From Macrostomum lignano (lineage: Eukaryota), in the NCBI GenBank assembly GCA_002269645.1, contig NIVC01002590.1:62001-126000 (forward strand): DNA of 64,000 nt, read 5' to 3'. Numbering within the stretch: position 1 is the stretch's first letter; each line of letters begins with the position of its first letter. Of the stretch, positions 24,018-50,540 are shown piece after piece. The notes under the pieces were generated by a model. That model searched no databases. It saw only the letters and a program-made list of their open reading frames with translations, and was not told the origin of the DNA. A program made the translations under genes and the position numbers.

Positions 24018-24795
<778 letters not shown>

Positions 24796-26533: not shown

Positions 26534-28660
26534 GACACACAGGTGAGTATTTAGACACACAAGTGAGTATTTAGACACACAGGTGAGTGTATATAGACAC
26601 ACAGGTGAGTATTTAGACACACAGGTGAGTATTCAGACACACAGGTGAGTATTTAGACACACAGGTGAGTATTTAGACACACAGGTGAGTATTTAGACAC
26701 ACAGGTGAGTATTTAGACACACAGGTGAGTATTTAGACACACAGGTGAGTGTATATAGACACACAGGTGAGTATTTAGACACACAGGTGAGTATTCAGAC
26801 ACACAGGTGAGTATTTAGACACACAGGTGAGTATTTAGACACACAGGTGAGTATTTAGACACACAGGTGAGTATTTAGACACACAGGTGAGTATTTAGAC
26901 ACACAGGTGAGTATTTAGACACACAGGTGAGTATTCAGACACACAGGTGAGTATTTAGACACACAGGTGAGTATTTAGACACACAGGTGAGTATTTAGAC
27001 ACACAGGTGAGTATTTAGACGCACAGGTGAGTATTCAGACACACAAGAGAGTATTTAGACACACAGGTGAGTATTCAGACACACAGGTGAGTATTCAGAC
27101 ACACAGGTGAGTATTCAGACACACAGGTGAGTATTCAGACACACAGGTGAGTATTTAGACGCACAGGTGAGTATTCAGACACACAGGTGAGTATTCAGAC
27201 ACACAGGTGAGTATTTAGACGCACAGGTGAGTATTCAGACACACAAGAGAGTATTTAGACGCACAGGTGAGTATTTAGACACACAGGTGAGTATTCAAAC
27301 ACACAGGTGAGTATTTAGACGCACAGGTGAGTATTCAGACACACAGGTGAGTATTTAGACGCACAGGTGAGTATTCAGACACACAGGTGAGTATTTAGAC
27401 ACACAGGTGAGAAGCTCGTATTCAGACACACAGGTGAGTATTCAGACACACAGGTGAGTATTCAGACACACAGGTGAGTATTCAGACACACAGGTGAGTA
27501 TTTAGACACACAGGTGAGTGTATATAGACACACAGGTGAGAAGCTCGTATTCAGACACACAGGTGAGTGTATATAGACACACAGGTGAGTGTATATAGAC
27601 ATACAGGTGAGAAGCTCGTATTTAGACACACAGGTGAGTGTATATGGACACACAGGTGAGTGTATATAGACACACAGGTGAGAAGCTCGTATTTAGACAC
27701 ACAGGTGAGTGTATATGGACACACAGGTGAGTGTATATAGACACACAGGTGAGAAGCTCGTATTTAGACACACAGGTGAGTATTCAGACACACAGGTGAG
27801 TATTCAGACACACAGGTGAGTATTCAGACACACAGGTGAGTATTTAGACACACAGGTGAGTGTATATAGACACACAGGTGAGAAGCTCGTATTCAGACAC
27901 ACAGGTGAGTGTATATGGACACACAGGTGAGTGTATATAGACACACAGGTGAGAAGCTCGTATTTAGACACACAGGTGAGTGTATATAGACACACAGGTG
28001 AGAAGCTCGTATTCAGACACACAGGTGAGTGTATATAGACACACAGGTGAGAAGCTCGTATTTAGACACACAGGTGAGTGTATATAGACACACAGGTGAG
28101 AAGCTCGTATTCAGACACACAGGTGAGTGTATATAGACACACAGGTGAGAAGCTCGTATTCAGACACACAGGTGAGTGTATATAGACACACAGGTGAGTG
28201 TATATAGACACACGGGTGAGAAGCTCGTATTTAGACACACAGGTGAGTGTATATGGACACACAGGTGAGTGTATATAGACACACAGGTGAGAAGCTCGTA
28301 TTTAGACACACAGGTGAGTGTATATGGACACACAGGTGAGTGTATATAGACACACAGGTGAGAAGCTCGTATTTAGACACACAGGTGAGTATTCAGACAC
28401 ACAGGTGAGTATTCAGACACACAGGTGAGTATTTAGACACACAGGTGAGTGTATATAGACACACAGGTGAGAAGCTCGTATTCAGACACACAGGTGAGTG
28501 TATATAGACACACAGGTGAGAAGCTCGTATTCAGACACACAGGTGAGTGTATATAGACACACAGGTGAGTGTATATAGACACACGGGTGAGAAGCTCGTA
28601 TTTAGACACACAGGTGAGAAGCTCGTATTCAGACACACAGGTGAGTATTTAGACGCACAA
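26534..28660. repeat. Composite minisatellite with near-invariant core GACACACAGGTGAG (20-, 22- and 27-bp units)
   Basis: Units end in TATTTA/TATTCA, TGTATATA or AAGCTCGTATTTA. Confidence 0.96.
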
Positions 28661-29149: not shown

Positions 29150-29716
<567 letters not shown>

Positions 29717-30376
29717 AGCATCCTGTAGCAGGAAGCTGTCTCTTTCAAAAGCAGCAAACAAGCACCGGAAATTCTGCAACAAGTCACGCTTCAGGCGGAG
29801 AATTACTCTCGTGAAAAGCAGAACCCGGTCAAACCAGCGGCTTGCCACATGAATAGCGGGACCCCCGCTGAGAGGCGCTGAGAACTGCTCATAGTTATGA
29901 TTATTATTAATTCCCAATCTGCTTTGCCAGCTTTTTTCGAAAGTAATCACGTTTTGAGTCCCATTGCTAATACTCACTTGGCTAATAATTCTTGGTCATT
30001 CACACTTCATCAGTCAAACTAATATATAAGAATAATTTTATTCGAACCCGTTGGTTAGTGACTCAGTGAGACCCATACTCCATCATCAGGTGATTCACCT
30101 AGAGTCTCTGAGTAGCGCTGGGTAGGTAGGAGAGAGAGAGGACCCGTCAAAATTTTGAGCACGAGTCCGCCATGAAAGAGCAAAGACTCAAAATTGTGGT
30201 GGGGGCGAGGAGGATGAAGGCAGCTGGGGAGTCAGAGAGTTGAGATGGAGGTTAATTATTTCTTAATGCTGCTTCCTGACGTGCCGCATCCGGTGATGGA
30301 GGGCCTTCCACATCAGGTGGGAAGAGGAGGCGGCGCGTTTTGTTGCGATTCGGACAGTGCTTTTGACTTTTGACTT

Positions 30377-31262
30377 TTGACTGACTGACTGACTGACTGA
30401 CTGACTGACTGACTGACTGACTGACTGACTGACTGACTGACTGACTGACTGACTGACTGACTGACTGACTGACTGACTGACTGACTGACTGACTGACTGA
30501 CTGACTGACTGACTGACTGACTGACTGACTGACTGACTGACTGACTGACTGACTGACTGACTGACTGACTGACTGACTGACTGACTGACTGACTGACTGA
30601 CTGACTGACTGACTGACTGACTGACTGACTGACTGACTGACTGACTGACTGACTGACTGACTGACTGACTGACTGACTGACTGACTGACTGACTGACTGA
30701 CTGACTGACTGACTGACTGACTGACTGACTGACTGACTGACTGACTGACTGACTGACTGACTGACTGACTGACTGACTGACTGACTGACTGACTGACTGA
30801 CTGACTGACTGACTGACTGACTGACTGACTGACTGACTGACTGACTGACTGACTGACTGACTGACTGACTGACTGACTGACTGACTGACTGACTGACTGA
30901 CTGACTGACTGACTGACTGACTGACTGACTGACTGACTGACTGACTGACTGACTGACTGACTGACTGACTGACTGACTGACTGACTGACTGACTGACTGA
31001 CTGACTGACTGACTGACTGACTGACTGACTGACTGACTGACTGACTGACTGACTGACTGACTGACTGACTGACTGACTGACTGACTGACTGACTGACTGA
31101 CTGACTGACTGACTGACTGACTGACTGACTGACTGACTGACTGACTGACTGACTGACTGACTGACTGACTGACTGACTGACTGACTGACTGACTGACTAA
31201 CTGACTGACTGACTGACTGACTGACTGACTGACTGACCTGACTGACTGACTGACTGAGTGAC
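30377..31262. repeat. (GACT)n microsatellite, ~880 bp
   Basis: Direct observation. Confidence 0.98.
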
Positions 31263-31699
31263 TGATAAACCATGAAGTGATGGCGAGTTAACAAGCATTT
31301 TTTGAAACTTTAGACAATCTAATATACAAAAATGGTTCGTTATTTTTCAAATTTTTACAATAACACTTGCAAACGAAATTACTTTCTATTTATTCTATTT
31401 TTAATATATATTTTAATATAAAAAACGACAATAAGTACTTTGAGTAGTGAAAAAGCGAAGGCAGGAAATGTAAACTGCTTGAACAGTATAGCTGGGAAAT
31501 GCTAAGCCAACTGAGTGTGTTTTAGTAGATAATTCTAAGGCTCATATAAGTCTCTATGGAATGGATATGATTGGGATTACAGGTGTCTGAGGAAGAGATG
31601 AGACGGAGGCAGCGTCAGAGGTGATCTCAATGCATAAGGAAAATTTTGCCTCAAACATGATCAGTCAGCATCAGTAAGACATAACTGATTCCGTCAAGA

Positions 31700-34600
31700 T
31701 CAATAGCCAAACACCTGTGTCGTAGCAGAGGTGATGTCGCGCGAGCAGCTGTCAGCGACGGAGTCTGACGCCAGGCGGCCTCGGCAGGCCCGGCACTGAA
31801 TGCTGGCCGCTGCAGCTGCCGCAGGGTCTGCTGGCACCGAGTCATCGACGCCGAGCTCCGCAGTCAGCGTGGGCGATCGAGATCGTGGCAAAGGCTTGGC
31901 AACTGGCTGAGGCTGAGCAGTGAGCAGCGCTGGCGTCGGCTGTGGGCGGGACAGCTGGAACTCGACCAGGGACCAAGACTGCAGAGCAGACAGCACCAGC
32001 TGCAGAGCGAATTGAGAGTGCACTGCGGGACGGCGAGGGCGAGGGAGTCGGGGGGGGGGGCTCAGGAAACATGGTAGTAGTTAATGGCTTGTGAGATATT
32101 CAACGAGAACTTTAAGGATACTTCAGGAAAATTATGGAAAACATGGGAATGTAAATCACAACTGAGGCATTGCATGCATCTCAACATGCATTGGAGACAG
32201 GATTGTGTGGCAATAAAATGGGGATCATTCATCTATTTGGGGAATAAAACAGTGATCGATTTGGGGAATAAAACTGTAATCTACTTGGGGATTAAAACGG
32301 GGATCAATAATCTACTTCGGGAATAAACTGGGGATCAGTAATCTACTTGGGGAATAAACTTGGATAAATGACCCACTTAGGAATAAAATGGGGATAAATG
32401 ACCTACTTAGGAATAAAATATGGGGATAAATGAACCACTTAGGAATAAAATGGGGATCAATGATCTACTAGGGAAATAAACTGGGGATCAGTGATCTCTT
32501 TGGGGAATAAAACGGGGATTAATGATCTACTAAGGGAATAAAACGGGGATTAATGATCTACTAGGGGAATAAAACGGGGATTAATGATCTACTAGGGGAA
32601 TAAAACGGGGTTCAATGATCTACTAGGGGAATAAAACGGGGATCAATAATCTACTAGAGGAATAAAACGGGGATCAATAATCTACTAGAGGAATAAAACG
32701 GGGATCAATAATCTACTAGAGGAATAAAACAGGGATCAATAATCTACTAAGGGAATAAAACGGGATCAATAATCTACTAGAGGAATAAAACGGGGATCAA
32801 TAATCTACTAGGAGAATAAAACAGGGATCAATAATCTACTAAGGGAATAAAACAGGGATCAATAATCTACTAGAGGAATAAAACAGGGATCAATAATCTA
32901 CTAAGGGAATAAAACGGGGATCAATGATCTACTAAGGGAATAAAACAGGGATCAATAATCTACTAGAGGAATAAAACAGGGATCAATAATCTACTAAGGG
33001 AATAAAACAGGGATCAATAATCTACTAGAGGAATAAAACGGGGATCAATGATCTACTAAGGGAATAAAACAGGGATCAATAATCTACTAGAGGAATAAAA
33101 CAGGGATCAATAATCTACTAAGGGAATAAAACAGGGATCAATAATCTACTAGAGGAATAAAACGGGGATCAATAATCTACTAAGGGAATAAAACGCGGAT
33201 CAATGATCTACTAAGGGAATAAAACGGGGATTAATGATCTACTAGGGGAATAAAACGGGGTTCAATGATCTACTGGGGGAATAAAACGGGGATTAATGAT
33301 CTACTAGAGGAATAATACGGGGATCAATGATCTACTCAGGGAATAAAACGAGGATCAATGATCTACTCAGGGAATAAAACGGGGATCAATGATCTACTAA
33401 GGGAATAAAACGCGGATCAATGATCTACTAAGGGAATAAAACGGGGATTAATGATCTACTAGGGGAATAAAACGGGGTTCAATGATCTACTAGGGGAATA
33501 AAACGGGGATTAATGATCTACTAGAGGAATAATACGGGGATCAATGATCTACTCAGGGAATAAAACGAGGATCAATGATCTACTCAGGGAATAAAACGGG
33601 GATCAATGATCTACTAAGGGAATAAAACGCGGATCAATGATCTACTAAGGGAATAAAACGGGGATTAATGATCTACTAGGGGAATAAAACGGGGTTCAAT
33701 GATCTACTAGGGGAATAAAACGGGGATTAATGATCTACTAGAGGAATAATACGGGGATCAATGATCTACTCAGGGAATAAAACGGGGATCAATAATCTAC
33801 TCAGGGAATAAAAGGAGGGATCAGGGAGAGAATACTTAAGGAGATGGGGACCCCCAGGCTTATGCCACAGACCACTCCAAACTGGCCGCAAATTATGCCA
33901 CACAAGGAGACAATGCGCAGGTCAGAGAGCGGACTCAACAGCCACTCACCAGCGATCTCAGCGGCATTGGCGCCATCAGCCTTCCAGAAGTCGGCGACGT
34001 AAGCGGCGCTGTGCAGCCCCATCTGGGCGAGGCAGGCGCCGGCCAGCGGAACGAACTTGGCGCCAAGCCGGTAGCCGGGAAGCAGCGGCGGCCGGCGGCA
34101 GCAGCGGGCGACGAGGGCGACTGCGGCGAGGCTGCCGGCCAGGCGGGAGGCAGCGGCGAGGCCGCGCAGCCAGACGAGCCAGCCCTCCAGCGGGGGCTGC
34201 CAGGGCGGCTGCGGATCCGACCGGAGCTGCTGAGGCGGCCGGGCGCCGCCGTTGTCCAGCAGGATGGCAGCCGACACCGCCAGGTTGCAGCAGTGGAACA
34301 GCTGGCCCTGGCGCACCAGAGCCCGCGCCGTCAGCAGCTGGAATCTGGCAGTGGTGGCGCATCTTGCCCTGGGGGAGACTGGAAGCTAACTGGGGACAGT
34401 GGGGATGGCGGGGACGGTAGGGATGATGGGGATGATGGGGATGGTGGGAATGGTGGGGATGGTGAGGATGATGGGGATGGTGGGGATGGTGGGGATGGTG
34501 GGGATGATGGGGATGGTGGGGATGATGGGGATGGTGGGGATGGTGGGGATGGTGGGGATGGTGGGGATGGTGGGGATGATGGGGATGGTGGGGATGATGG

Positions 34601-37600
34601 GGATGGTGGGGATGGTGGAGATGATGGGGATGGTGGGGATGATGGGGATGGTGGGGATGATGGGGATGGTGGGGATGGTGGGGATGGTGGGGATGGTGGG
34701 GATGATGGGGATGGTGGGAATGGTGGGGATGGTGGGGATGGTGGGAATGGTGGGGATGGTGGGGATGAACAATGAGAGTAATAGAGAGATGGTGGGGATG
34801 GTGGGGATGGTGGGGATGATGGGGATGGTGGGGATGATGGGATGATGGGATGATGGGGATGGTGGGGATGGTGGGGATGGTGGGGATGGTGGGGATGGTG
34901 GGGATGGTGGGGATGGTGGGGATGGTGGGGATGAACAGTGAGAGTAATAGAGAGATGGTGGGGATGGTGGGGATGGTGGGGATGGTGGGGATGGTGGGGA
35001 TGATGGGGATGGTGGGGATGATGGGATGATGGGGATGGTGGGGATGATGGGATGATGGGGATGGTGGGGATGGTGGGGATGGTGGGGATGGTGGGGATGG
35101 TGGGGATGGTGGGGATGATGGGGATGGTGGGGATGATGGGGATGATGGGGATGGTGGGGATGATGGGATGGTGGGGATGGTGGGGATGGTGGGGATGGTG
35201 GGGATGGTGGGGATGGTGGGGATGGTGGGGATGGTGGGGATGAACAGTGAGAGTAATAGAGAGTAAGCAGGGAGCGAGTGGGATAGTGGGCAGGGAGGGG
35301 TTGGGATAATGGGAGGGGTTGGGATAATGTGCAGGGGTTGGGATAATGGGAGGGAGGGGTTGGGATAGTGGGCAGGGAGGGGTTGGGATAGTGGGCAGGG
35401 AGGGGTTGGGATATTGGGCAGGGAGGGGTTGGGATATTGGGCAGGGAGGGGTTGGGATATTGGGCAGGGAGGGGTTGGGATATTGGGCAGGGAGGGGTTG
35501 GGATAGTGGGCAGGGAGGGGTTGGGATATTGGGCAGGGAGGGGTTGGGATATTGGGCAGGGAGGGGTTGGGATATTGGGCAGGGAGGGGTTGGGATAGTG
35601 GGCAGGGAGGGGTTGGGATATTGGGCAGGGAGGGGTTGGGATATTGGGCAGGGAGGGGTTGGGATATTGGGCAGGGAGGGGTTGGGATATTGGGCAGGGA
35701 GGGGTTGGGATAGTGGGCAGGGAGGGGTTGGGATAGTGGGCAGGGAGGGGTTGGGATATTGGGCAGGGAGGGGTTGGGATAGTGGGCAGGGAGGGGTTGG
35801 GATATTGGGCAGGGAGGGGTTGGGATAGTGGGCAGGGAGGGGTTGGGATATTGGGCAGGGAGGGGTTGGGATAGTGGGCAGGGAGGGGTTGGGATATTGG
35901 GCAGGGAGGGGTTGGGATAGTGGGCAGGGAGGGGTTGGGATAGTGGGCAGGGAGGGGTTGGGATAGTGGGCAGGGAGGGGTTGGGATATTGGGCAGGGAG
36001 GGGTTGGGATAGTGGGCAGGGAGGGGTTGGGATATTGGGCAGGGAGGGGTTGGGATAGTGGGCAGGGAGGGGTTGGGATAGTGGGCAGGGAGGGGTTGGG
36101 ATAGTGGGCAGGGAGGGGTTGGGATATTGGGCAGGGAGGGGTTGGGATAGTGGGCAGGGAGGGGTTGGGATAGTGGGCAGGGAGGGGTTGGGATAGTGGG
36201 CAGGGAGGGGTTGGGATAGTGGGCAGGGAGGGGTTGGGATAGTGGGCAGGGAGGGGTTGGGATAGTGGGCAGGGAGTGAGTCGTGAGTGGGATAATTGGG
36301 AGAATTATCCAGATTCGAGCCCCTTACCTACTCCAAAGCGGCTTGGTCCTGAGCACGGCAACCCGCGCGCCGTCTTCGCAGCCAGTCTGGTCGGCGAGGG
36401 CGCGCCGGGGGCCCAGAATGAAGCGAATAGCGCCGAATTTGAAGGCCAGAAGATTTGCCAACTCGTTAAAAGCGACCATGGAATACCTGAAAATTAGTTC
36501 AAGTATTTCTGCTTATTTACCTAGTTTACAGGTGTCATAAATTAATAAGCGGCAAACTCACGCTGCCATCAGCACGTGCATGAACTCGGCCGATTTTGGC
36601 ACCAGTATTGCCAAACAAATCAGCCATTGGTACACCTGGAGGGCAGGTTGGGAGTGCATCAGGTTCAGGTATTTCCTTTTACTAGTGATAATGGAATGAA
36701 ATAATTGAATAGTTTTAAGACGTCCAACAGACAAGGTAAAACGTAAACAAGGTGAAAAGTGAAGTGCTTGCGCCGTCGGCTAATAAAAAAACTGCATTTT
36801 TCTACTATTATCAGTAGCAAAAGTAGCGTGTTTTATATTTTTAATGAAATAAAAACTATAAAATCTGTGGGGTACTGCTGTAAGAATTTCATTTTTAATA
36901 ACGCAGCAATACGCTCAGCTACTCAGATACACGCACCGGAAACAGGGCGGTCAGGTTTGAGGCCAGGGTCAGGTGAGAATGCGACAGGCGGTCTCTGACC
37001 ATGGCGCCCATGCGAGTGGCGTACAGGCAGGCGCCGGCCGCGGCCAGGGTCAGGCAGACTGCGGTCTCCGCTTTGCCCACCGTTGGCAGGGCTGCGGTGA
37101 ATAAATGGAAAATGGGAATCAGTGTTTAGTTAGGCGTGGGATCGGTATACAATCTGGCACAACCTGACACTCACTGGCTGACACAACCTGACACTCACTG
37201 GCTAACACAACCTGACACCCACAGGCTGACACAACCTGACACAACCTGACACTCACTGGGTGACACAACCTGACACTCACTGGCTGACACAACCTGACAC
37301 CCACAGGTTGACACAACCTGACACCAACTGGCTGACAGTCCAACTAAACCTGACACACGCTGGCTGGCTGACAGTGACAATCCAGAACAACCTAACACGC
37401 TGACACTCTCAAGTGACAACACAATGGAAATTAATGCTATTTACTTTGTGTATAAAATTTGACAGACATCACGACACTTCAGCATAATCTGACGCAGTCT
37501 GACTAGCATTCTAACAGTCTGACCTGAAACACTAAAGCATACTAAACAGTAAACACCAACAATCAAAGTTAATCTGAGACGATGCTTTATTAAAGGAAGT

Positions 37601-37773
37601 CTTGGTCTCGGTTTGTACCATTCTGCTTAAAAAAGCAGGATTTTTAACACCCCTACACAGCAAGACTCACTTGTAATGTAAGCCAGACCGCTCTGCGCTT
37701 CCACATCTGAAGAAGCAGGCGGTGTTCCGTTCGTGACTTGGCCAGATTGGCACAGTGGGGGTTGCTGTCCCAT
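31700..37773 (-). CDS. slc51a: Organic solute transporter alpha (OST-alpha/SLC51A, TMEM184-related)-like multi-pass membrane protein, ~410 aa; exons (minus) 37773-37671, 37091-36937, 36635-36562, 36486-36328, 34368-33950, 32022-31700
   Basis: Six exons join through GT-AG junctions with matching phases (1,0,2,2,1) into one stop-free frame. Motifs ALFPVYQWLICLAILVPKS, YSMVAFNELANLLAFKFG, LRTKP, RFQLL...AILLDNG, WLVWLRG...LPGYRLGAKF resemble OST-alpha segments I recall (VLCCFGLWIPRS, FYAVCFYLL...GFGG, LGEQNMGAKF). The family call is by eye, with no database search. Confidence 0.78.
32290..33815. repeat. 31-bp minisatellite GGGAATAAAACGGGGATCAATGATCTACTA(A/G) in OST-alpha-like intron 5
   Basis: Tandem copies; each carries AATAAA on the + strand (antisense to the host gene). 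Confidence 0.94.
34395..35245. repeat. 9-bp repeat GGGGATG(G/A)T in OST-alpha-like intron 4
   Basis: Tandem copies interrupted by GAACA(A/G)TGAGAGTAATAGAGA spacers. Confidence 0.93.
35290..36275. repeat. 23-bp G-rich minisatellite GGGCAGGGAGGGGTTGGGATA(G/T)T in OST-alpha-like intron 4
   Basis: Tandem copies with four G-runs per unit. Confidence 0.95.
37150..37400. repeat. ~24-bp minisatellite CTGACACAACCTGACACTCACTGG in OST-alpha-like intron 1
   Basis: Same unit as the 45840-46840 array. Confidence 0.85.
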
Positions 37774-39468
37774 TGCATTGATTTTAGGCTTTGGTGGATT
37801 GAAGGCGCAGTTCTACTCAGAACTCATTAATTAATTTAAATATTTCCACCCTTGGACTATCAATTATCTGCTGAACTATCGGCTATTTTAATTGATTTTA
37901 ATCGTGGTCTGGTTGATTTAGCCCTGCGTGCCTAGGCGTCTGGCTCAGAAGATTGGGGTGGTTGTAGCCGATGTACATAGCCAGAGCCAATGTACATTAA
38001 ATCCCTAACCCTCCCCCGCATGTACAAAGGGCGGGCCACTTTCTCTTTTACTACTCTACCAGAAGTCTTTACCCCAAACCGTTCACCCCGTGCACAATCA
38101 AATTAGGCAACGTTTCACGCGCAATGTTCAAGGCCATGCAAATTGGTGTACAAGTTGGATGTTTAGTCCACAGAACCACAGAAAGTTCTGCGGTTTAGCC
38201 TTCATTAATTATAGTGAACGAGAACCGAGTCCAAACGAAAAATGAATACAGGAAGCATAATATTCTATTTGATTTTGTTCATAAGCTACATACGGGGCTT
38301 ATGAACAAATTGATTTAAACAAAAAATTCTCAAGTTTTTATAAGATACCGTATTTTGATCGTTTTTTGATATTTCATAAACGGAAAGTTGTATAGTAATC
38401 GTTTTTTTATGTTTTACATTTACATATACTAATATCTGTTTTCTAAAATTTGAAAAAAAAGTTGTTATAAAAGAGGAAGACTGAAAAAAGATATAATTTT
38501 TAATATGCGTCCTGCTTTATAACGACTATACTAGTAGCTTTTAAATATAATTTTTATTACTAACTGATTTGTTATACTTTCTTAGCAAAGCTTTTATAAA
38601 CGACTATATTTCAGCATCAACCATAATGAATACTTATCAGGATGCGATGAAGAAGATGCGATATATTATTAAATAATCAATAACATTGTAGAGGGACGCC
38701 CGTTGCTCTTGATATTGTTCCCACGAAAAATTCTTCAAACTGGAATGAACAAAAAATTTTTATTCAGTCAAATAAGTCTTTTTTTAATAAATATATGAAA
38801 ACGTGCTCAAGCATCCACTAGGAGCTCTTATTCCTAAACTTATTCGGAACACTCATTCTAAAGCCATTAATTGTTTTGTTGGAAGAAAAGTTTGCTATTT
38901 TGTTTGCTAGATGGCCTAGGTTAATAATGCGACATGCTGTCGGATTACAAAAGTGAGCCTTTAGCAGCGAATATTGTTATTTCTCACGGAAAGTCCGCAT
39001 TAAAAACTGCAATTAACATAAATGAAAAACAGAGATCTATAAATAGTATTCCGAAATCTGAGTGCGTATGCAATAAATTCATTTGCAGAGACAGGTGTAC
39101 AAATTAATAATTTTTCTGGTAAACTCGGGCTTTTGTCATAGTTTCAGCAGGCCACTAGTCGGAGTTGTCTTCATCTCTTTCGGCGAATATTTACACTGAA
39201 AATAGTTGTCAAAAACACTCCCCAGTGACTAAAGTGCTGCAAAACAATGCATAAAGTTTAAAGCGGTATTTACGCCGGGTGAGAGCAGCCACCAGCAGTG
39301 CAGAGGCGACTCGAAGCAAGAAAAAACTGTTGCCTTCATTTAGCCAGCCAACACCCTCTGTTTTCGAATAATAGCTCCTATATTGTCTCTCTGCTTACCA
39401 CCCACCCGCCCATAAAAACAAGCTTCATCTCAGAGTGAATTATTTAGACAACCGACAATTTAGCGCTC

Positions 39469-42081
39469 ATGCGGCCGTGGGTACCAATCCTGCCATTACT
39501 GCTTCAACTCGCCCGCGTCAGGGCCCAGTGCAACCCGGCCAGCTCCGTGCCCGACCCTCGAGTTGGCGTTGTTGACTACCCGGGCACGGCTGGCGACAGC
39601 TGCTACTTTCCCTTCACCTACGGCGGCAGGGTGTTCCACGAGTGCGACGGGCCCTACTGCGACGGCTCCTTCTGCGGCTACTGGTGCGCCACCAGCTGCA
39701 ACTACCCCACCGACTACTCGGCCTGGCGCTTCTGCCGCTTTATGGTGGCCGACCTGGCCAAGCCGAACTGCGCCGCCCTGGCCAACATGAGCTCCTCGAC
39801 CGAGATTGAAGTCTACGGCAGCAGCGGCTTAGGCACAGCCTGCTACTTTCCGTTCATGCACGACAATGTCTGCTACGATGACTGCATTGATACTGACGGC
39901 AGCGGCCAGTTTTGGTGCTCAACCACGGATGTCATGTACCACGTAGCTACCAACAAGCGCTTCTGTCGTGCCACCAGGAAGGGCCTGAGGGATTCTAGCT
40001 GTTCCAGACTTAACGCTACCGCCCCCGTGTACCTTCCACAGCAGATTGGCAACTACTCAATAGCTCTGGTGCAAACGGATCCTACAGGTAACTGCACCTT
40101 CCCTTTCTACTACAAAGAGAAATGCTACGATGACTGCACGACGGTGGATGCTCAAGCTTGGGACCTGCCCTGGTGCCTAACCGAGAAATACTACCAGCCT
40201 AACAAGCGAACGAGGGTCTGCCCGCACTATCGCAAGTATAAGGAGGTCACCGGCCTCGCACTTGACTGGGGATTCTTCTACATCCGAGAGCACACCAGCT
40301 GCAGCTCCGGTGGTGCCGCTTGCAACTCGTCCTGGTCTCCCGCAGGTTCCGCTGTGCCAACCACATCAGCTGGATCAAAACGGATGGCGCTGCAGCCGTC
40401 AGCTGAGCCAATTGAGGTCATGCCTCAGCCAAATGGCCTCTTCATCTTAAAGTTGCCATTGAGTTGCACCGACTCCAACTGGAGAAGCTTAAGCATCGAT
40501 GGCAGCGAGGTCGGCCTGGAGCCGATTTCGAACGAGCGCGAGTTCTGGGACCTCCGTCCCACTGGCACGCCAGGTGCGTTCACAGTGCAGTCGATGCGAA
40601 ACAGCACGCGCGGAATGTATCTGTCTCACAGCTCGCTGAGCGGTACTCCGGTTTTAAGCCTGTCGGCTACCAGCGCCACCCAGTGGCGATTCGAAGCGCT
40701 TTCAGATCTGTCTATGGCCTCGCTGGGTCTGCCGTGCGAGAATCCGACCCGGCTGGACGGATCTTGGTGTGCCTGGAGTGAGTACTTTGTGTCCGGGAGC
40801 GTTTCGACCAGAAATCGAACGTGCGCCTGCCCGCCAGCAATTCGCGGCCTGCCATGCGATGGGAACAGCACGGAGGTTGCCTCTGTGGTCAACGGCAGCT
40901 GGTGCGGTTGGTCCGCTTGGACCGAGATCAGCGATGGCTACAACACGAGATCTCGATTGTGCAACTGTAGCGCGCCGAAGAATGGCGGTGCAGACTGTCC
41001 AGGCGCGGGCAACGAGACTGGCCTGCGAGTGAACGGGTCGTGGTGCGATTGGTCCGCGTTCACTGTCGACCCTGACGGCTGGGGATTTCGGAGTCGTTAC
41101 TGCAACTGCAGCGCGCCGCAGTACGGAGGTTTGGACTGCGTCGGACCAAGCAACGATACAGGAGTGGCTGTCAACGGCAGCTGGTGTGCCTGGTCTTCAT
41201 TCTCTCCCGCAGATAGCTCTGGACTGAGCTCCCGAACCCGAGTTTGTAACTGCAGCGCTTCGCAGTACGGAGGCTCAGAATGCGTTGGAGCCAGTAACGA
41301 GACCGGGCCTCAAGTAAACGGGTCCTGGTGCAACTGGTCGCCATTCAATGTTACACACGGTCAAGGAACTCGAAGAAAATCTTGCAACTGCAGAGCGCCA
41401 CAGTTCGGAGGTGCTGCTTGTCCAGGAAGCAGTATCGAGACAGGCCCCGCAGTCAATGGCACTTGGTGCAGTTGGTCGCCTTTTACTGTGAGTGGCTCTC
41501 TAGGCGTCAGAACGCGAGCCTGTAACTGCAGTGCGCCGCAGTATGGCGGCTCGAATTGCTCTGGACTAGGCAGAGAAGAGGGACCGGCCGTGAACGGCAC
41601 CTGGTGTGCATGGTCGGCCTATTCAAGTAACGGAACTCATGAAACTCGACGACGAGTCTGCAACTGCAGCGCGCCGCAGTTCGGCGGATCTGACTGTCCG
41701 GGCAGAGGCGTCGAGGCGAGCAGCATCGTTTCCGGCGGCTGGTGCAGCTGGTCAGCCTGGTCTGTCTCTGGCACCGGCCGGAGCAGCAGAAATCGATCAT
41801 GCACCTGTCCCTCAGCCAGTAGGCTGGGCGCCGGATGCAGCGGGCCGGACACTGAAACTGAAAGCGGCGGTGGCGGCGGCAGCAGCGGACGGGCGCATCC
41901 AGCCGAGCCGGGCGAGCCAGGCGCGGCCTTCACCAGCCTGGACTCGTACACCCGCCTCGTGGCCTGGTCAGCGGTCATCTGCCTGGCCATGCTGACCAGC
42001 ACACTGACCGGCCTGGGCCTCATGCTCAACCGGATTGTCCAGTCCAGACGCTCTGTTGGCTCCAGCACCGAGGCGTCTTAG
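39469..42081 (+). CDS. Intronless 870-aa type I membrane protein: signal peptide, 3 fibronectin type II domains, beta-trefoil/ricin-B-like region, 8 variant TSP1 repeats, TM helix, 16-aa tail
   Basis: Single ORF with a hydrophobic N-terminus. Three CxFPFxY/H...C...WC...C FN2 motifs (aa ~45-89, 125-166, 209-251), a QW-type motif (ATQWRF), eight ~47-aa repeats mostly of the form (N/D/S)GxWCxWS...RxRxCxC...GGxxCxG, and TM segment LVAWSAVICLAMLTSTLTGLGLML. Confidence 0.92.
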   Translation: MRPWVPILPLLLQLARVRAQCNPASSVPDPRVGVVDYPGTAGDSCYFPFTYGGRVFHECDGPYCDGSFCGYWCATSCNYPTDYSAWRFCRFMVADLAKPNCAALANMSSSTEIEVYGSSGLGTACYFPFMHDNVCYDDCIDTDGSGQFWCSTTDVMYHVATNKRFCRATRKGLRDSSCSRLNATAPVYLPQQIGNYSIALVQTDPTGNCTFPFYYKEKCYDDCTTVDAQAWDLPWCLTEKYYQPNKRTRVCPHYRKYKEVTGLALDWGFFYIREHTSCSSGGAACNSSWSPAGSAVPTTSAGSKRMALQPSAEPIEVMPQPNGLFILKLPLSCTDSNWRSLSIDGSEVGLEPISNEREFWDLRPTGTPGAFTVQSMRNSTRGMYLSHSSLSGTPVLSLSATSATQWRFEALSDLSMASLGLPCENPTRLDGSWCAWSEYFVSGSVSTRNRTCACPPAIRGLPCDGNSTEVASVVNGSWCGWSAWTEISDGYNTRSRLCNCSAPKNGGADCPGAGNETGLRVNGSWCDWSAFTVDPDGWGFRSRYCNCSAPQYGGLDCVGPSNDTGVAVNGSWCAWSSFSPADSSGLSSRTRVCNCSASQYGGSECVGASNETGPQVNGSWCNWSPFNVTHGQGTRRKSCNCRAPQFGGAACPGSSIETGPAVNGTWCSWSPFTVSGSLGVRTRACNCSAPQYGGSNCSGLGREEGPAVNGTWCAWSAYSSNGTHETRRRVCNCSAPQFGGSDCPGRGVEASSIVSGGWCSWSAWSVSGTGRSSRNRSCTCPSASRLGAGCSGPDTETESGGGGGSSGRAHPAEPGEPGAAFTSLDSYTRLVAWSAVICLAMLTSTLTGLGLMLNRIVQSRRSVGSSTEAS

Positions 42082-43318
42082 CAGATCAGACCGAAACGGC
42101 CGACACCACCGATATTCTCTGACTACGGATCTCACAGCGCCTACCCGGGATGACCTTTCCGGGACTAGCTTAGTCTAGCTATACTCGTAGCCTCAGTTGA
42201 GCAAGCTGCGATCGTGCTCACTCCTGCAATTCATCTTTCATTGACACTTCGCACTCTCCCTAAATATACATAAGATTTATAACCTGACAGCATCGAGCTG
42301 CCTAATTTATTCTTTGCCATATTACTGAAACACTCAAATTTAGTATATTAGACTAGCAATCCAGTGCCCCCCTTCCGAGGCGCTCAATAAGCAAGGAGCA
42401 AAAATTATTCATGCAAATCCATTAAAAAAGCACATTTTCTTAAGAACCAATTCCTTCTTCAGTTTTATAAATCACCTTATTTGAGTAAAATTGTCATGAA
42501 AAAAGATGCTTACCATGAATCTCTTGCTTCTAAAGTAACAAAGGGACGCAACAAAATAAAGCCCTCAAGAAGATAGCAGGCATACCCCCTAAATCGAAAG
42601 CATCCCCAGAAAGCAAGCATCCCCCCCCCCCAGATAGCAAGCATCCCCTGATTGCAGGCATCCCCAGAAAGCAAGCATCCCCCAGACAGCAAGTAGCTAG
42701 TGCAACAATTTCCTCAGCTAATGCAATAATCGCTTTCTAAGCTATTGTAATAACCCCTTTGTAAGCTAGTGCAATAAACCTTTACTCGTCAAGTACAATA
42801 ATCCTTTTCTCATGGTGCAATAATCGATGTCTCTGCTAGTACAATCGTCACCTTCTCAGCTAGTGCTGAGCAACAAAATGAAATGAGGCGAACTTTTTCA
42901 GCTCTTTATTATTGCGTAAAAACAGGTCTTTAAAAATAACATTGTCATCAAATCTTGAGTTTATAAAATACCTTGGTAGAGCAATTGAAAGTTTGATGTA
43001 TTCCAAAATGCCGAATTTAGTATTGGAAATGTCATCTAGAAAACTGGCATATTGAAGAATCTCATAATTACTCTGCAACAAAACTATTTTGAATAGATTA
43101 AAAACAAATAATATTTCATGAAAAAATCTTTTCTGTTAAAAAATAAAAAAAATACGCAAATTACTTGCAAGTTACTAATAGTAGTGCGAACTGAAAAGCG
43201 TAGAATAGTAGCGTAAAATTTGCACTGTTCCAGTTTGAACGGCGCGGCCTGGAGCTGACAGATAAATGGCGCCAAAAGGGCAGACAGAAGACAGTTCGAC
43301 CGCCCTCAGCAACCACTA

Positions 43319-46300
43319 TCAGGGAGCCGGCTTGGCTGACTGCTGCCGCCGCCGCCTCTCCAACCGCTGCTGCACCAGGTCATCCGCCAGCAGCAGCAGC
43401 CCCGCGAATCCGATCAGAGCCGACAGGAAGATGATGGAGGCGTTCCAGGAGCCGGTCCGGTCGAACAAATCGCCTGGAGAGGAATTTCAAGTATCTATTC
43501 GAGGGTTCGCGGCGATAAAAGCGTTCGGCACTGGTTAGTGAGGCTGGCTTTGGCGCTCTGGGCCAGCCTGAATGGAATTAAATACTTCTAGTGCGAGCTG
43601 AGGGTCTGCTTGCCTGTCTGCTTGTACTGAATATTCTGCTGTGTGTACCCCAATAACCTCACAATGCCTCTCTAGTCCATAGTACTCCAATCCAAATTCA
43701 CGTATCTTCATTGCTTCCCCAATTTCCATCCATCCCATCCCATCCTATCTCATCCTATTCAATCCCATCCCATCCCAACCTATCCCATCTCATCTCATCT
43801 CATCACATACCATCCCATACAATCCCATCTCATCCCATGTCATCCCCATCCCATTCCATCTCACCCATCCCATTCCATCCCATCCCATCCTATCCCATCC
43901 CATCCCATCCCATCCCATCCCATCCAACTCCATCCCATCCTATCCTCTCATATCCCATCCGATCCCCATCCCTAGCAGCAGTAACGCACCCAGCAGCACG
44001 GGCACGATCAGCATGATTATGCTCTCGATGATGCCCAGCATCCCGTAGGTCAAGCCCAGGTTCTCAATCCCGAACGTCTCCACCAGCATTGGCGCCAGGT
44101 TGGGAACCAGGCCGCCAGCCAGCAGGCCCTCCAGCAGAGCGTAGGCCAGGGCAGCGGCCGGTGTCGGGTGCAGCAGGAGGCACCAGAGCGCACCCTGGGC
44201 GATCGTGAGGGTCAGCAGCAGCAGCTGCCGCCTGAACAGCTGCCTGTCAGCCAGGAAGCCGATGCTAATCCGAGTGACGAGGTCGGTGATGCCCTGGTAC
44301 TGCAGCAGCCGGGTGTACTCAGTGGCCGTCATGCCGATGTTCTTGCCGTGCTGCGGCAGCACCATGAAGTTGAACGGCATGGCCTGCGCGGCCAGCGACA
44401 GGCTGAACAGCAGCACCCAGAAGCGAGGCCGGCGCATCAGGCGGCCGCTCTCTTTGAAGCTCCGGCGAAGTCGGGCGACGAAGTTTCCCTGAAAGACGTC
44501 TTCCGGGGTATTCGCTGGGCCGCCGCCGGAGTCAAACAAGACGCTGACGTCTCCACAGGACGCCAGGAAGATCGCCGGGGCGTGCGGGGCCGGGGCGCCG
44601 CGGGACGCATCTTCCGCTGCCTCTGCGGACGTGGCGTTCGTCGAGGTAGCTCGACGTCGACAGCTGCGCCCGGCTGCGGACTTGGCCGAGCCGGACACAA
44701 AAAGAATGTTATCGGCGCTGGTGCAGTAGTGGTGCGGGTCACCGTTGGTTTGTTGCTTGGCTTTGCTCTTGGAGGTGCAGCTTGCACAAGCCTCTGGCTG
44801 GCTCTTGCTATCGTTGTCCATTTCACTTTCTACATCCTTTTCCGTGCTCTGCTTTTTAGTCTTCATTGCGTTTTCTTCCACCACCTCTTCAGCATTCTTC
44901 TCCGCATTCTTCTCCGCATTCTTCTCCGCATTCTTCTCCGCATTCTTCTCCGCATTCTTCTCCGCATTCTTCTCCGCATTTTTCTCCGCATTCTTCTCCG
45001 CATTCTTCTCCGCATTCTTCTCCGCATTCTTCTCCGCATTCTTCTCCGAATTCTTCTCTGCATTCTTCTTCGCATTCTTCTTCGCATTCTTCTTCGCATT
45101 CTTCTCTGCATTCTTCTCCGCATTCTTCTCCGCATTCTCAGCCTGTTCGCCGATCAGCGCCTCCGCCTCAGGCGCAGCTCCCTGGTCGCTGGCGGGCACA
45201 AACGGGCGCATGACAGCGGCAGCCACGGCCACGTTGAGCATGATTGCGCCCCAGATCAGCATGCAGCCGCGGAAGGTGTACTGCTCAATTAGATAGTTCA
45301 TCAACGGTGGCATGCACAGAGCGCCCATGGAGCAGCCGGAGAACGTGATGCCCATAGCGACCGTCCGGCGCTGCAGAAAGTAGTAGCTGATGATCAGCAC
45401 AGTCGGCGGGTGCGTCATGGACAGCCCGATGCCCACCAGCAGCCCGATGGTGAAGTACAGCACCTCCAGCGATTCGGCAAAGTAGGACAGGGAGAAACCT
45501 AAGCTGAGGAAACAGCTGCCGATGGACACGACCAGACGGACTGAGAAGCGCCTGGCCAGGGCCATTGTGACTGGCGCTGGGCGGGTTCGCGGAGGAAGAT
45601 GGATTAGTGGAGAATCATAGGGTTAAACTGGTGCCCATCTGCTCATCTTCTGACTTACTAAGAATGAGAAACACCAGAAACATGAAGCTCAAAATCCATG
45701 AGGTGTCCCGCTTGCTCCTGTTGTAGTGCTCGGACACGCTGGCCAGCAGCAGGCCGGTGCTCCGGACATTGCCGATCACCAGGATGTGCAGGAATGACCC
45801 AGCTGAAATGCATCCGGTCACCTGCTCGCTTAACTGGCAGTCTGGCACTCACTGACTGACAGGCTGGCACAGCCTGACACTCACTGGCTGACAAGCTGAC
45901 ACAGCCTGACACTCACTGGCTGACAAGCTGACACAGCCTGACACTCACTGGCTGACAAGCTGACACTCACTGACTGACAGGCTGGCACAACCTGACACTC
46001 ACTGGCTGACAAGCTGACACAACTTGACACTCTCTGACTGACAAGCTGACACAGCCTGATACTCACTGACTGACAATCCGACACAACCTGACACTTATCA
46101 GATACTGACTGACTATCTAACACAGGATGCCACACACTGGCTGACACAATCTGACTCTCAGTTGCTGACACAATCTGACATTCACTGGCTGACACAGCCT
46201 GACACTCACAGGCTGACACAGTCTGACACTCACTGGCTGACACAGCCTGACACTCACTGGCTGACACAGTCTGACACTCACTGGCTGACACAGCCTGACA

Positions 46301-46930
46301 CTCACAGGCTGACACAGGCTGACACAACCTGACACTCACAGGCTGACACAGCCTGACACTCACTGGCTGACACAGCCTGACACTCACAGGCTGACACAGG
46401 CTGACACAACCTGACACTCACAGGCTGACACAGGCTGACACTCACAGGATGACACAGTCTGACACTCACAGGCTGACACAGGCTGACACTCACAGGCTGA
46501 CACAACCTGACACTCACAGCCTGACACAGCCTGACACTCACAGCCTGACACAACCTGACACTCACAGGCTGACACAGCCTGACACTCACAGCCTGACACA
46601 ACCTGACACTCACAGGCTGACACAGCCTGATACAACCTGATACTCACAGGCTGACACAGCCTGACACTCACAGCCTGACACAACCTGACACTCACAGGCT
46701 GACACAGCCTGACACAACCTGATACTCACAGGCTGACACAGCCTGACACTCACAGCCTTACACAACCTGACACTCACAGGCTGACACAGCCTGACACCCA
46801 CAGGCTGACACAACCTGACACAGCCAGACACTCACTATGACAATTCAGCACAACCACAGCACTCACCGCCGCAGATGACCCAGGCCCAGCCCCTGTCAAC
46901 AGGCGATGCAGCTGGCTTGGCAAGTGCCAT
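43319..46930 (-). CDS. slc16a: Monocarboxylate transporter (SLC16/MCT family, MFS); exons (minus) 46930-46867, 45802-45659, 45576-43990, 43473-43319
   Basis: The N-terminus has the MCT signature PVDRGWAWVICG, followed by TM segments, YFLQRRTVAMGITFSGCSMG, a large central loop, and the final GDLFDRTGSW + TM12. All three introns are GT-AG and phase 1. The symbol is family-level only. Confidence 0.93.
43725..43975. repeat. (ATCCC)n degenerate pentamer repeat in MCT intron 3
   Basis: Direct observation. Confidence 0.85.
44890..45140 (-). repeat. Coding 12-bp repeat (AATGCGGAGAAG = NAEK) inside MCT exon 3
   Basis: About 20 in-frame copies in the central loop. Confidence 0.93.
45840..46840. repeat. 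~24-bp minisatellite CTGACACAGCCTGACACTCAC(T/A)GG filling MCT intron 1
   Basis: Tandem copies with an internal CTGACAC subrepeat. Confidence 0.93.
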
Positions 46931-47814
46931 CAAAGATGGCCTCCAAAACAGAAAAAACCTAATGAAGATCTACTGCAATGGAAAACTCGTATTTCGGTGA
47001 AGTCTTTCGGAAAGTAGTTTAAAACCTGGCAGTTCTGAGGTTTGTCACCACCGACGGACCCGGCTCGAGTTTACAATGATCAAAATCGGCGATAACAGAA
47101 AGAAATAAATGAAATTCTAAACAGACAAATGAAGCGCTACTGAAAAAGCGAGATGGCATCTTATAAAAAGCAAGATTGGCCAGTTTTTTCTCCATCCGAA
47201 GCTCCATTGGCTGCAGTGCGCTGACCTGATGCCATTCCCTTACCCCGAGCAGCGCTGTACGCGGAGCCATGGACGCCATAAGGTAGACATCTGGACACAG
47301 GTCTAGCCCAATGGAATTTCCCCAATCGATTGAAACGCAAAAACACAAACTGCCTTCCATTCCAGACTCTCTCTCTCTCTGTCTAGGAGTCCCTGGCAGA
47401 GCGCTGATGCTGCGGCATCTGCCCCTCACCGTCCGCCCAAGTGCACACTGCTAGGGGTACACTGAGACGTACAGGGAGGGAGCAAGGACTCAATAGCTAC
47501 GCACTGCCCTGTCCTGTGACATCCATCTGTACTCGCCTGTACCGCGGCTACATGAGTACACTTTCCTCAGCGCCTCTCATTGCCTCTCATTGAAACCCTG
47601 AGATCTGGAATGGAACCCGGCTATTTTTAGGAATAAAACCGACTAAGAACTGGGCCATGCTTTTGTTGGCATCAGGATCGTAGTTTGTCTGCGTCCCTGG
47701 GTGTATTAAGGGCCCGCGTTCACGCCAACAGGCAGTTAGAGTTGTCAATCAAGAAACAACACTGATTTCAAGCTGTGGTTTCATCAGGATTGCCTATAGC
47801 ACTAATGCGTAATG

Positions 47815-49560
47815 AGCTGGGATCTGTAACCTGGGATCTCGGATCTGTGTTCCGGGATCTGGGATCTGGGATCTGGGATCTAGCATATGGAATTTATGAC
47901 CTATGCTCTGGGATGTAGAATCTGGGATTTGGGATTTGGGATCTAGGATTTTGGATTCGGGATCTAAGATGTGGAATATTGGATCAATGTTTTGGGATCT
48001 TGGGCGTGGGATTAGGATCTAATTTAGGCTGCCTGTTTTCTGGAGTCTTCATCCGGGATATGAAATCTGGGATCTGAGATCTGGGATCTGGGATCTGGGA
48101 TCCGGAATCTGGGATCTGGGATCTGGGATCTGGGTTCTGGGATCTGGGATCTGGGATCTGGGATCTGGGATCTGGGATCTGGGATCCGAGATCCATGATC
48201 TGAGATCTATGATCTGGGATCTATGATCTGGGATCTATGATCTGGGATCTATGATCTGGGATCTATGATCTGGGATCTATGATCTGGGATCTATGATCTG
48301 GGATCTATGATCTGGGATCTATGATCTGGGATCTATGATCTGGGATCTATGATCTGGGATCTATGATCTGGGATCTATGATCTGGGATCTATGATCTGGG
48401 ATCTATGATCTGGGATCTATGATCTGGGATCTATGATCTGGGATCTATGATCTGGGATCTATGATCTGGGATCTATGATCTGGGATCTATGATCTGGGAT
48501 CTATGATCTGGGATCTATGATCTGGGATCTATGATCTGGGATCTATGATCTGGGATCTATGATCTGGGATCTATGATCTGGGATCTATGATCTGGGATCT
48601 ATGATCTGGGATCTATGATCTGGGATCTATGATCTGGGATCTATGATCTGGGATCTATGATCTGGGATCTATGATCTGGGATCTATGATCTGGGATCTAT
48701 GATCTGGGATCTATGATCTGGGATCTATGATCTGGGATCTATGATCTGGGATCTATGATCTGGGATCTATGATCTGGGATCTATGATCTGGGATCTATGA
48801 TCTGGGATCTATGATCTGGGATCTATGATCTGGGATCTATGATCTGGGATCTATGATCTGGGATCTATGATCTGGGATCTATGATCCGAGATCCATGATC
48901 TGAGATCTATGATCTGGGATCTATGATCTGGGATCTGGGATCTGGGATCCGGGATATGGGATCCGGTATCTGGGATCTGGGATCTAGGATCTGGGATTTG
49001 GCATCTGGGGTTTGGGATTTGGGATTTGGGATTAAGGATCTTGGATATGCGATTCATTATCTGAAATCTGGGATTCAGAAGTTAAAATCTCGCATCTATG
49101 ATTTGGGATTTAGGATTTGGAACCTGAGATGTGGAATAATGGATCAATGTAATGTTTTGGGATCTTGGGCGTGGGATTTCGGATTTCGGATCTGATTTGG
49201 CTGTCTGTTTTCTGGAGTCTTCATCCGAGATCTGTGATCTTGGATTTGGGATTTGAGATATGGGATTTCTAATCTGAAATTAGGGATTTGGAAGTTGAGA
49301 TCTTGGATCAGTGATTTGGAATTCGGGATTTTGGATCTCGAATCTGGGATGTGGAACATTAGAACCCATGTTCCGAGATCTTTGAGGCGGGATTTGGGAT
49401 CTATGATCTGTTTTAGGCCGTCCGTTTTCTAGAATTTTTTATCTGGGATTTAGGATCTGGGATCTTGGGATCTCTCTGGAATCTGCATTCTAAAATATGG
49501 CTCTAGAATCTGTCTTCGAGGATAAAGAATTTGTGGGATTTGGGATCTGAGGAATATAAT
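47815..49560 (+). repeat. (GATCTGG)n-based satellite with a perfect 14-bp core GATCTGGGATCTAT (~48205-48925)
   Basis: Direct observation; degenerate flanks contain a duplicated ~100-bp block. Confidence 0.92.
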
Positions 49561-49854
49561 CTTAGAACCTGGGACCTGGGATTTAGAGCCAGGAATTTTG
49601 AGCAACGAGTATGTAGAAAGAAAAATTCGAAGACTACTACTCAACGGAATAAGTACTATATGTAGCGCTTTTATCGCATTTTATCACATTTTGGGCACAA
49701 ATTTGTAGCTCAAATTATTCTGGCTGCGCAGTGTTTTACTCAATAAGAAACACTAATACGCAAAATACAACTAAAGCAGGAAGCGGCTATTGTTCGTAGA
49801 GATGCGAGCGTTAAAGCGATGAGAGAAATGCCTGATCCCAATGTGTCAGCTACT

Positions 49855-50405
49855 CCAATCCCGATCCCAGATTCCAGATTCCAGATCCTAGATTCCAGAT
49901 CCTAGATTACAGATCCCAAATCCCAAATCCCAGATCCCAGACTCTAGATTCTAGATCATAGTAGCATTTCAGATCCCAGATCTCAGACTCTAGATTCCAG
50001 ATCATAGCATTCCAGATTCCAGATCCCAGACTCTACATCCTAGATCATAGCATCCCAAATCCCAGATCCCAGATTCCAGATCCCAGATCCCAGATCCCAG
50101 ATCCCAGATCCCAGATCCAAGATCCCAGATCCAAGATCCCAGATCCAAGATCCCAGATCCAAGATCCCAGATCCAAGATCCCAGATCCAAGATCCCAGAT
50201 CCAAGATCCCAGATCCAAGATCCCAGATCCAAGATCCCAGATCCAAGATCCCAGATCCAAGATCCCAGATCCAAGATCCTAGATCCAAGATCCCAGATCC
50301 AAGATCCCAGATCCAAGATCCCAGATCCTAGATCATAGAATTTCAGATCCCAGATCCCAAATCCTAGTTCTTACTATTTCAAATCTAAAGTCCCAGATCC
50401 CAGAT
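49855..50405 (-). repeat. (CCAGATC)n satellite, the inverted counterpart of 47815-49560
   Basis: The reverse complement of its core is GATCTGGGATCTTG. Confidence 0.9.
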
Positions 50406-50540
50406 GACAACCAATAGAAAGCAAGCGGTTGTACACGATGGTACGAGTTGCATTACGGTATATTACGAGCTAAAATCATTCGAGCGAAATAACCAGGCCA
50501 GTTGAGCAGCGGTTCTGCAGTCAGTCGGTGAGTCATTCAG

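Follow-up and report, generated by a model that had tools for sequence, protein, structure and literature searches.

What kind of protein is encoded by an open reading frame (ORF) that joins fibronectin type II (FN2) modules to thrombospondin type 1 repeats (TSRs), and does it belong to any family already described? The ORF lies at positions 39469 to 42081 (+ strand) of a 64,000-nucleotide stretch, referred to throughout as the window, from contig NIVC01002590.1 (positions 62,001 to 126,000) of Macrostomum lignano, a free-living, early-branching flatworm. A preliminary description, made from the letters of the DNA alone, had read it as a complete ORF running from a signal peptide to a transmembrane (TM) segment, with three FN2 modules, a beta-trefoil-like region, eight TSRs and the TM segment in that order. 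At the level of sequence, the data presented here show a type I, disulfide-rich surface protein with a head of three FN2 modules and an orphan domain, a stalk of eight shortened TSRs with 21 N-glycosylation sequons, and a short, unconserved tail. The FN2, TSR and TM assignments of the original order were borne out by Pfam, profile searches and hydropathy, but the label for the middle region was not. The protein may serve in adhesion, anchoring or uptake as a non-signalling receptor for a matrix or collagen-like ligand, a reading to which a probability of roughly 0.5 is assigned.

An intact gene with homeologs and a paralog

39469..42081, + strand: ORF of 870 amino acids (aa) plus TAG, a copy of the M. 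lignano gene BOX15_Mlig014498

The ORF listing of the window gives a complete, single-exon frame from ATG to TAG, at exactly the coordinates first reported, with in-frame stop codons just 5' of it and a GC content of 0.60 across the region against approximately 0.45 in the flanks. The contig, 159 kb long and part of M. lignano assembly GCA_002269645.1, matches window 29460..52081 at 100% identity; the neighbours of the gene are ordinary animal ones, encoding an MFS transporter and a DEG/ENaC channel, and no second copy of the 870-aa protein is present within the 64-kb window. Two homeolog copies are found on contigs NIVC01000094.1 and NIVC01002808.1, where they are annotated as BOX15_Mlig014498g3/g2, "hypothetical protein". 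The UniProt entry A0A267GYT2 (Mlig014498) carries the name "Fibronectin type-II domain-containing protein", so annotation as an FN2-domain protein was already in place.

Between the homeologs and the window copy, 35 of 2688 nucleotides are changed (98.7% DNA identity), comprising about 19 synonymous and about 13 amino-acid-altering changes, none of which alters a Cys or shifts the frame. Because synonymous changes outnumber non-synonymous ones, every Cys is kept and the frame is intact, the comparison indicates a working gene under purifying selection, and the ORF is judged to be a real, intact gene. The window stop codon (TAG, 42079-42081) is CAG in both homeologs, which continue for 24 extra codons (QQIRPKRPTPPIFSDYGSHSAYPG); the length of the cytoplasmic tail thus differs among copies of one gene in the polyploid M. 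lignano genome. That substitution, together with surroundings dense in minisatellites, might suggest a decaying, non-functional duplicate in a repeat-rich polyploid genome, but this is highly improbable given 870 uninterrupted codons, retention of 56 out of 56 ectodomain Cys and the excess of synonymous changes; moreover, the earlier stop trims only a non-conserved tail, and that of the paralog is shorter still.

The paralog group, Mlig009063 (A0A267E2T2, A0A1I8FYL0), is 45% identical to the window protein over 97% of its length and has the same architecture, but with ten TSRs rather than eight. All Cys of the head are conserved between the two. Identity is highest in the third FN2 module (81%), falls to 48% in the middle domain and is lowest in the tail (18%).

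Membrane anchor and tail

39469..39528, + strand: signal peptide, aa 1-20 (MRPWVPILPLLLQLARVRA then Q), read from the sequence by eye
41869..41955, + strand: juxtamembrane linker, aa 801-829, Gly/Ser/Pro-rich by sequence
41956..42027, + strand: transmembrane helix, aa 830-853 (LVAWSAVICLAMLTSTLTGLGLML), from the hydropathy maximum and an AlphaFold2 (AF2) helix
42028..42081, + strand: cytoplasmic tail, aa 854-870 plus TAG; the homeologs have CAG at the stop and 24 more codons

The N-terminus (MRPWVPILPLLLQLARVRA followed by QC) has a hydrophobic core and V-R-A at -3/-1, and was judged by eye to be signal-peptide-like. Residues 830-853 form the hydropathy peak of the whole protein and are the sole segment for which the AF2 predicted local distance difference test (pLDDT) exceeds 50, the segment being built as a helix. 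Behind it comes the charged stretch NRIVQSRRSVGSSTEAS (NRIVQSRR directly behind aa 830-853). A signal peptide, one C-terminal hydrophobic helix and a charged tail together give the layout of a type I single-pass protein, with an even number of Cys (56) in the ectodomain. A glycosylphosphatidylinositol anchor was considered and rejected, since a charged tail follows the hydrophobic segment in all copies. The tail had been put at 16 aa; it is indeed short and poorly conserved, but measures 17 aa in the window copy, 41 aa in the homeologs and 9 aa in the paralog.

The flexible 29-aa linker ahead of the TM segment would also allow a different fate, in which the membrane form is a precursor and the ectodomain is shed at the linker to become a matrix or adhesive component. 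TSRs do occur in Mlig-ap2, a secreted adhesive protein of M. lignano (PMC6410801), but the likeness to Mlig-ap1/Mlig-ap2 is limited to the type of TSR module. No furin or sheddase site can be recognised, and the TM segment is conserved in both M. lignano paralog groups, which leaves shedding improbable.

Three FN2 modules with additional cysteines

39601..39735, + strand: FN2-1, aa 45-89; Pfam fn2 24.3 bits, and fibronectin (PDB 1e88) at E 1e-7
39841..39966, + strand: FN2-2, aa 125-166; Pfam fn2 34.9 bits, Cys conserved in the paralog
40093..40221, + strand: FN2-3, aa 209-251; Pfam fn2 34.2 bits, 81% identical to the paralog

Pfam fn2 (PF00040) matched three stretches of the whole protein (E 5e-10) and, when the modules were scanned singly, each scored above the gathering threshold of 22.2 bits, so the original FN2 calls hold in a profile search. 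A phmmer search against PDB matched FN2 modules of fibronectin, PDC-109, MMP-2, factor XII and SEL1L. The canonical four Cys are present in each module (C45/59/73/89, C125/139/150/166 and C209/223/236/251) at the FN2 spacing of about 14/14/16, and all three modules contain the aromatic core of CYFPF or CTFPF, WC and Y.

Beyond this canonical set, the extra Cys noted at first sight in the xCYDDC motifs are present as C135 (VCYDDC, FN2-2) and C219 (KCYDDC, FN2-3) and are conserved in the paralog, as are two linker Cys, C101 and C178, which precede FN2-2 and FN2-3. The presumed disulfide pairs C101-C135 and C178-C219 are likely. FN2-1 had been said to carry a Cys-rich insertion: it is Cys-rich (C64, C69 and C77, with the linker Cys C21 upstream), but in the window copy these residues lie within a C2-C3 loop of normal length, unlike the paralog, in which that loop has a 9-10-aa insertion.

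FN2 modules have an established capacity to bind collagen and gelatin (PMC6211748, PMC3435950) and were long regarded as restricted to vertebrates, the exceptions being planarian VAL-FN2 fusions and an FN2 module in a planarian nidovirus (PMC3435950, PMC6211748), a literature that agrees with the initial remark that FN2 is sparse outside vertebrates. The VAL-FN2 proteins show that the module occurs in Platyhelminthes (PMC3435950).

The closest sequence outside Macrostomum is a bryozoan tandem-FN2 protein named 'epididymal sperm-binding protein 1-like' (ELSPBP1-like), at 28% identity and E 1e-20. This raises the prospect of a reproductive or gamete-surface protein, its family being among the fast-evolving reproductive genes of this hermaphrodite and its FN2 array attaching to choline phospholipids in sperm or egg membranes as in BSP/ELSPBP1, and the divergence of the paralogs to 45% identity and from eight to ten TSRs would suit it. 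The ELSPBP1-like name, however, mirrors tandem FN2 content only, and between homeologs the non-synonymous rate is below the synonymous rate, with no sign of rapid change, so that a role in reproduction appears a slim prospect.

An orphan middle domain

40222..40749, + strand: orphan middle domain, aa 252-427; restricted to the M. lignano paralogs in the HMMER search, with 48% identity between them

The region between FN2-3 and the stalk aligns essentially without gaps to that of the paralog, retains four conserved Cys (278, 285, 333 and 423) and reads as beta-strand-rich; on this footing it is taken to be a real, constrained domain. An exhaustive HMMER profile search of 1.84 billion representative proteins returned, apart from a single repetitive protein judged spurious, nothing but the clusters of the two M. 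lignano paralog groups. Pfam searches with the whole domain and six sub-fragments, at E up to 10, gave nothing relevant, including Ricin_B_lectin (PF00652) and RicinB_lectin_2 (PF14200), and a profile of the domain had no significant match in PDB.

The beta-trefoil-like label originally attached to aa 265-410 was neither established nor refuted by Pfam, PDB, hhalign or structure prediction, none of which gave significant support. Aligned by hhalign against the CysR domains of MRC1/MRC2 (an alignment built from PDB sequences), the domain gave a probability of 0.2%, and against four hand-entered, Pfam-validated R-type domains (ricin B1/B2, a CBM13 and CNL) one of 0.4% (P 0.16). No internal repeat emerged from dot plots of the domain, in which scores were no higher than those of shuffles. 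Conserved strands of the form xxW-hydrophobic occur at LDW267, EFW360 and TQW406, and their spacing of 93 and 46 aa fits a (QxW)3 pattern only on the assumption that the Trp of one repeat has been lost. The AlphaFold model of the middle region that had been suggested as a check was run with AF2 on a four-sequence alignment and reached a pLDDT of 29.8, without a usable fold; at full length, with five sequences, the pLDDT was 28.7 and even the FN2 and TSR modules were left unmodelled, because only five closely related sequences are available.

A phmmer search of aa 314-415 against PDB gave three weak matches, two of them to ricin-type lectins at sub-threshold values (9s11_A, E 0.2; Rhizoctonia agglutinin 4g9m_A, E 1.7). 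In these alignments EFW360 and TQW406 fall on QxW motifs and GTPV falls on GTPI. The matches were reproduced neither with the paralog nor with a two-sequence profile and are suggestive as a lead only; the beta-trefoil label is accordingly tentative, at somewhat less than even odds.

These matches bear on the idea of a pattern-recognition or scavenger receptor that is functionally analogous to the vertebrate mannose-receptor head: a cryptic ricin-type beta-trefoil lectin in the middle domain would act with FN2 to capture glycans, collagen fragments or microbes for uptake. Besides the aligned QxW and GTPI motifs, this would be in keeping with a strand-like pattern that recurs every ~41-56 aa in the middle domain, and with a type I layout and short tail like those of the mannose-receptor family. 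The ricin-type matches are, however, not significant, Pfam and hhalign show no R-type similarity, no internal repeat is significant, C-type lectin domains (CTLDs) number zero and the tail has no endocytosis motif, so that this explanation is unlikely. Quite unlikely, too, is the proposal that the head is an independent protostome invention of the collagen-plus-glycan unit found in the vertebrate mannose-receptor family, pairing three FN2 modules with a diverged ricin-type trefoil on a stalk of 4-Cys mini-TSRs in place of CTLDs. If it were true, tandem FN2 arrays would stand at the base of the flatworms, contrary to the vertebrate-only view of FN2, the middle region would count as a novel domain, orphan or cryptic lectin, and the 4-Cys mini-TSRs as a subclass not described before.

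A glycosylated stalk of shortened TSRs

40750..41868, + strand: TSR array, aa 428-800, eight shortened 4-Cys units; the unit profile matches the TSP-1 TSRs at E 1e-17
40750-40887, 40888-41028, 41029-41169 and 41170-41313, + strand: TSR units T1-T4
41314-41451, 41452-41589, 41590-41727 and 41728-41868, + strand: TSR units T5-T8

The eight units are each 46-48 aa long and follow the pattern WCxWS...RxRxCxC...GGxxC. Scanned singly with Pfam TSP_1 (PF00090), only T5 passes (22.7 against a threshold of 21.6), and the rest score at most 19 bits or have no match. When 15 units drawn from the two paralogs were aligned and turned into a profile, all 27 of its PDB matches were TSR proteins, the best being TSR2-3 of TSP-1 (1lsl), with UNC5, C6-C9, BAI1, ADAMTS13 and properdin among the others. 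Nine positions are invariant across the 15 units (W5, C6, W8, R21, C25, C27, G34, C37 and G39) and R23 is at least 90% conserved.

Compared with TSP-1, the units have a 5-residue deletion at the tip of the CSxTC hairpin and stop before C5/C6, but gain a Cys immediately after the first Trp and a second two residues past C3 (C-x-C). They thus depart from the canonical six-Cys TSR, which has CSxTCG and C5/C6 with every unit above the Pfam gathering threshold, and, as judged from these alignments, are a shortened 4-Cys variant in which the WxxW (C-mannosylation-type) and RxR layers are kept. Because the CSxTC hairpin tip is deleted, the mini-TSRs have no site for O-fucosylation by POFUT2. The stalk contains 21 NxS/T sequons, about three per repeat, against 5.1 +/- 1.9 in 2000 shuffles (shuffle maximum 11), an excess that supports the glycosylated stalk of the preliminary description.

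A proposed model for receptor function

A model of the proposed receptor can be assembled from these parts. After cleavage of the signal peptide, the ectodomain would present its head, in which the three FN2 modules carry additional disulfides, held away from the cell surface by the TSR array acting as a long, stiff, glycan-shielded spacer. The aromatic core of the FN2 modules (FPF / Y / WC / Y) would bind a collagen-like or Pro-rich matrix ligand or a choline lipid, the FN2 modules of MMP-2/9, fibronectin, Endo180 and the BSP proteins being the model for such binding, and the orphan middle domain may add a second binding site, possibly for carbohydrate. The receptor is read as non-signalling because the tail has no conserved motif; it would serve in adhesion, anchoring or uptake, with any signalling passing through a partner.

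Several points weigh against this account. FN2-2 and FN2-3 are without the last conserved Trp, and the ligand specificity of FN2 modules is unreadable from sequence. The middle domain has no family assignment, so the head could act in ways unrelated to matrix binding, and with an unusable AF2 model the geometry of the stalk and the disulfide pairing are inferred only. Since the stop codon of the window copy differs from that of the homeologs, tail length is variable. The locus names Mlig014498 and Mlig009063 appear in no paper of the searchable literature, and the proposed function draws on domain types.

M. lignano is amenable to RNA interference, in situ hybridisation and transgenesis, which makes the function testable. 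Should the receptor reading hold, the presence in an early-branching flatworm of tandem FN2 modules that pass the Pfam threshold would bear on the timing and frequency with which FN2 spread outside vertebrates, a compact 4-Cys TSR that lacks the O-fucosylation hairpin but keeps the Trp/Arg ladder would be useful for defining the minimal TSR fold, and the middle domain would be a constrained extracellular domain without detectable relatives among the representative proteins searched. Three such FN2 modules in a macrostomid are of some interest for module evolution. No long-standing open question is touched, and new combinations of domains are frequent among the extracellular proteins of invertebrates.

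Paralog copies and surrounding sequence

A copy of Mlig009063 was located at 6001-9260 of a stretch fetched from contig NIVC01002830.1. The last two of its ten mini-TSRs retain C5/C6-like Cys, and its ORF ends inside the ninth, so that an intron of about 420 nt has to be assumed for the annotated model; the window gene, by contrast, is single-exon. The UniRef name 'Protein-tyrosine-phosphatase' for the paralog A0A1I8FYL0 was rejected, as both the precomputed Pfam annotation and a scan of its 90%-cluster-mate gave fn2 only. A0A1I8GD55, in the same cluster, is a 2735-aa 'C2H2-type domain-containing protein'; the name of A0A1I8FYL0 was probably mis-transferred, and A0A1I8GD55 is probably a chimeric gene model.

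The window itself is extreme in its minisatellites, with 54 rows in the Tandem Repeats Finder output and units of 20-34 bp repeated 30-95 times, for example at 13818-15818, 26530-28591, 32279-33823, 35267-36276, 51042-52593 and 62812-63785. The long 'ORFs' at 23786-24808, 30263-31294 and 51024-52682 are translated repeats only, and one of them draws spurious Pfam matches (Gp5_C, DUF445). Between 34001 and 36000 the GC skew is very strong, at +0.74, over G-rich repeats that have the potential to form G-quadruplexes and lie inside or beside the span of the upstream gene: 34391-35242 contains about 94 copies of TGGGGATGG, and 35267-36276 about 44 of a 23-mer.

Two unrelated coding segments were also recognised on the - strand. 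ORF 43940-45565 represents one exon of a transporter of the major-facilitator type (Pfam MFS_1, E 6e-27); within it, a 12-nt unit repeated in tandem (44892-45138) is translated as a long (NAEK)n run in the protein. In ORF 55266-56618, which belongs to an unrelated neighbour gene, Pfam recognises the domain of an amiloride-sensitive sodium channel of the DEG/ENaC type (ASC, E 1e-60).

Relation to known families

Pfam recognises only fn2 and TSP_1 in the window protein, a homeolog and the paralog, and no C-type lectin domains. Searches for homologs by word index, run on the full protein, the head and a profile of the three FN2 modules with a tool of limited sensitivity, found no FN2 plus TSP_1 architecture elsewhere and returned only the M. 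lignano paralog, the bryozoan FN2 protein and one short fragment. No described family that joins FN2 to TSP1 emerged from literature searches. The statement that the combination belongs to no named family is upheld by these results, the relatives of the head and middle regions being only the M. lignano paralog and FN2-only proteins.

A close parallel in overall design is the mannose receptor family (MRC1, MRC2/Endo180, PLA2R1 and LY75), whose members are likewise type I proteins with an N-terminal, FN2-containing binding head, a long ectodomain and a short tail, and of which MRC1, MRC2 and PLA2R bind collagen through FN2. The window protein differs in having three FN2 modules rather than one, a stalk of TSRs and no CTLDs (8-10 in the family), and the domain beside FN2 is C-terminal to it, whereas the CysR domain of the mannose receptors is N-terminal. 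Membership of the family was rejected on the absence of CTLDs, the CysR hhalign probability and the presence of only a 24-aa linker N-terminal to FN2-1.

Consecutive FN2 modules with the CxFPF...WC...Y...C core are shared with MMP-2/MMP-9 (three modules, as here), the collagen-binding region of fibronectin and BSP/ELSPBP1; unlike these, the window protein is membrane-anchored, carries extra Cys and has neither a protease nor FN1 modules. Among flatworm proteins, the planarian VAL-FN2 fusions (SmdVAL4/8, DrVAL9/12) are also extracellular and contain bona fide FN2 (PMC3435950), but, being secreted members of SCP/TAPS, they carry a single FN2 module at the C-terminus and lack both TSRs and a TM segment.

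An extracellular run of TSRs followed by a TM segment is found in THSD7A/THSD1, UNC5, semaphorin-5, ADGRB/BAI and the apicomplexan TRAP/MIC2 proteins. A short tail is common to the window protein, THSD7A and TRAP-like proteins, and the WxxW and RxR layers are retained here, but the window repeats are 46-48 aa long with 4 Cys and no other domain is held in common with these TSR-array surface proteins. On present alignments, kinship to the FN2 and TSR families is via module type only, the relationship termed 'epaktologs' in the sense of PMC3927612. The architecture is unnamed, a lineage-restricted mosaic of known modules and one orphan domain brought together by ordinary domain shuffling.

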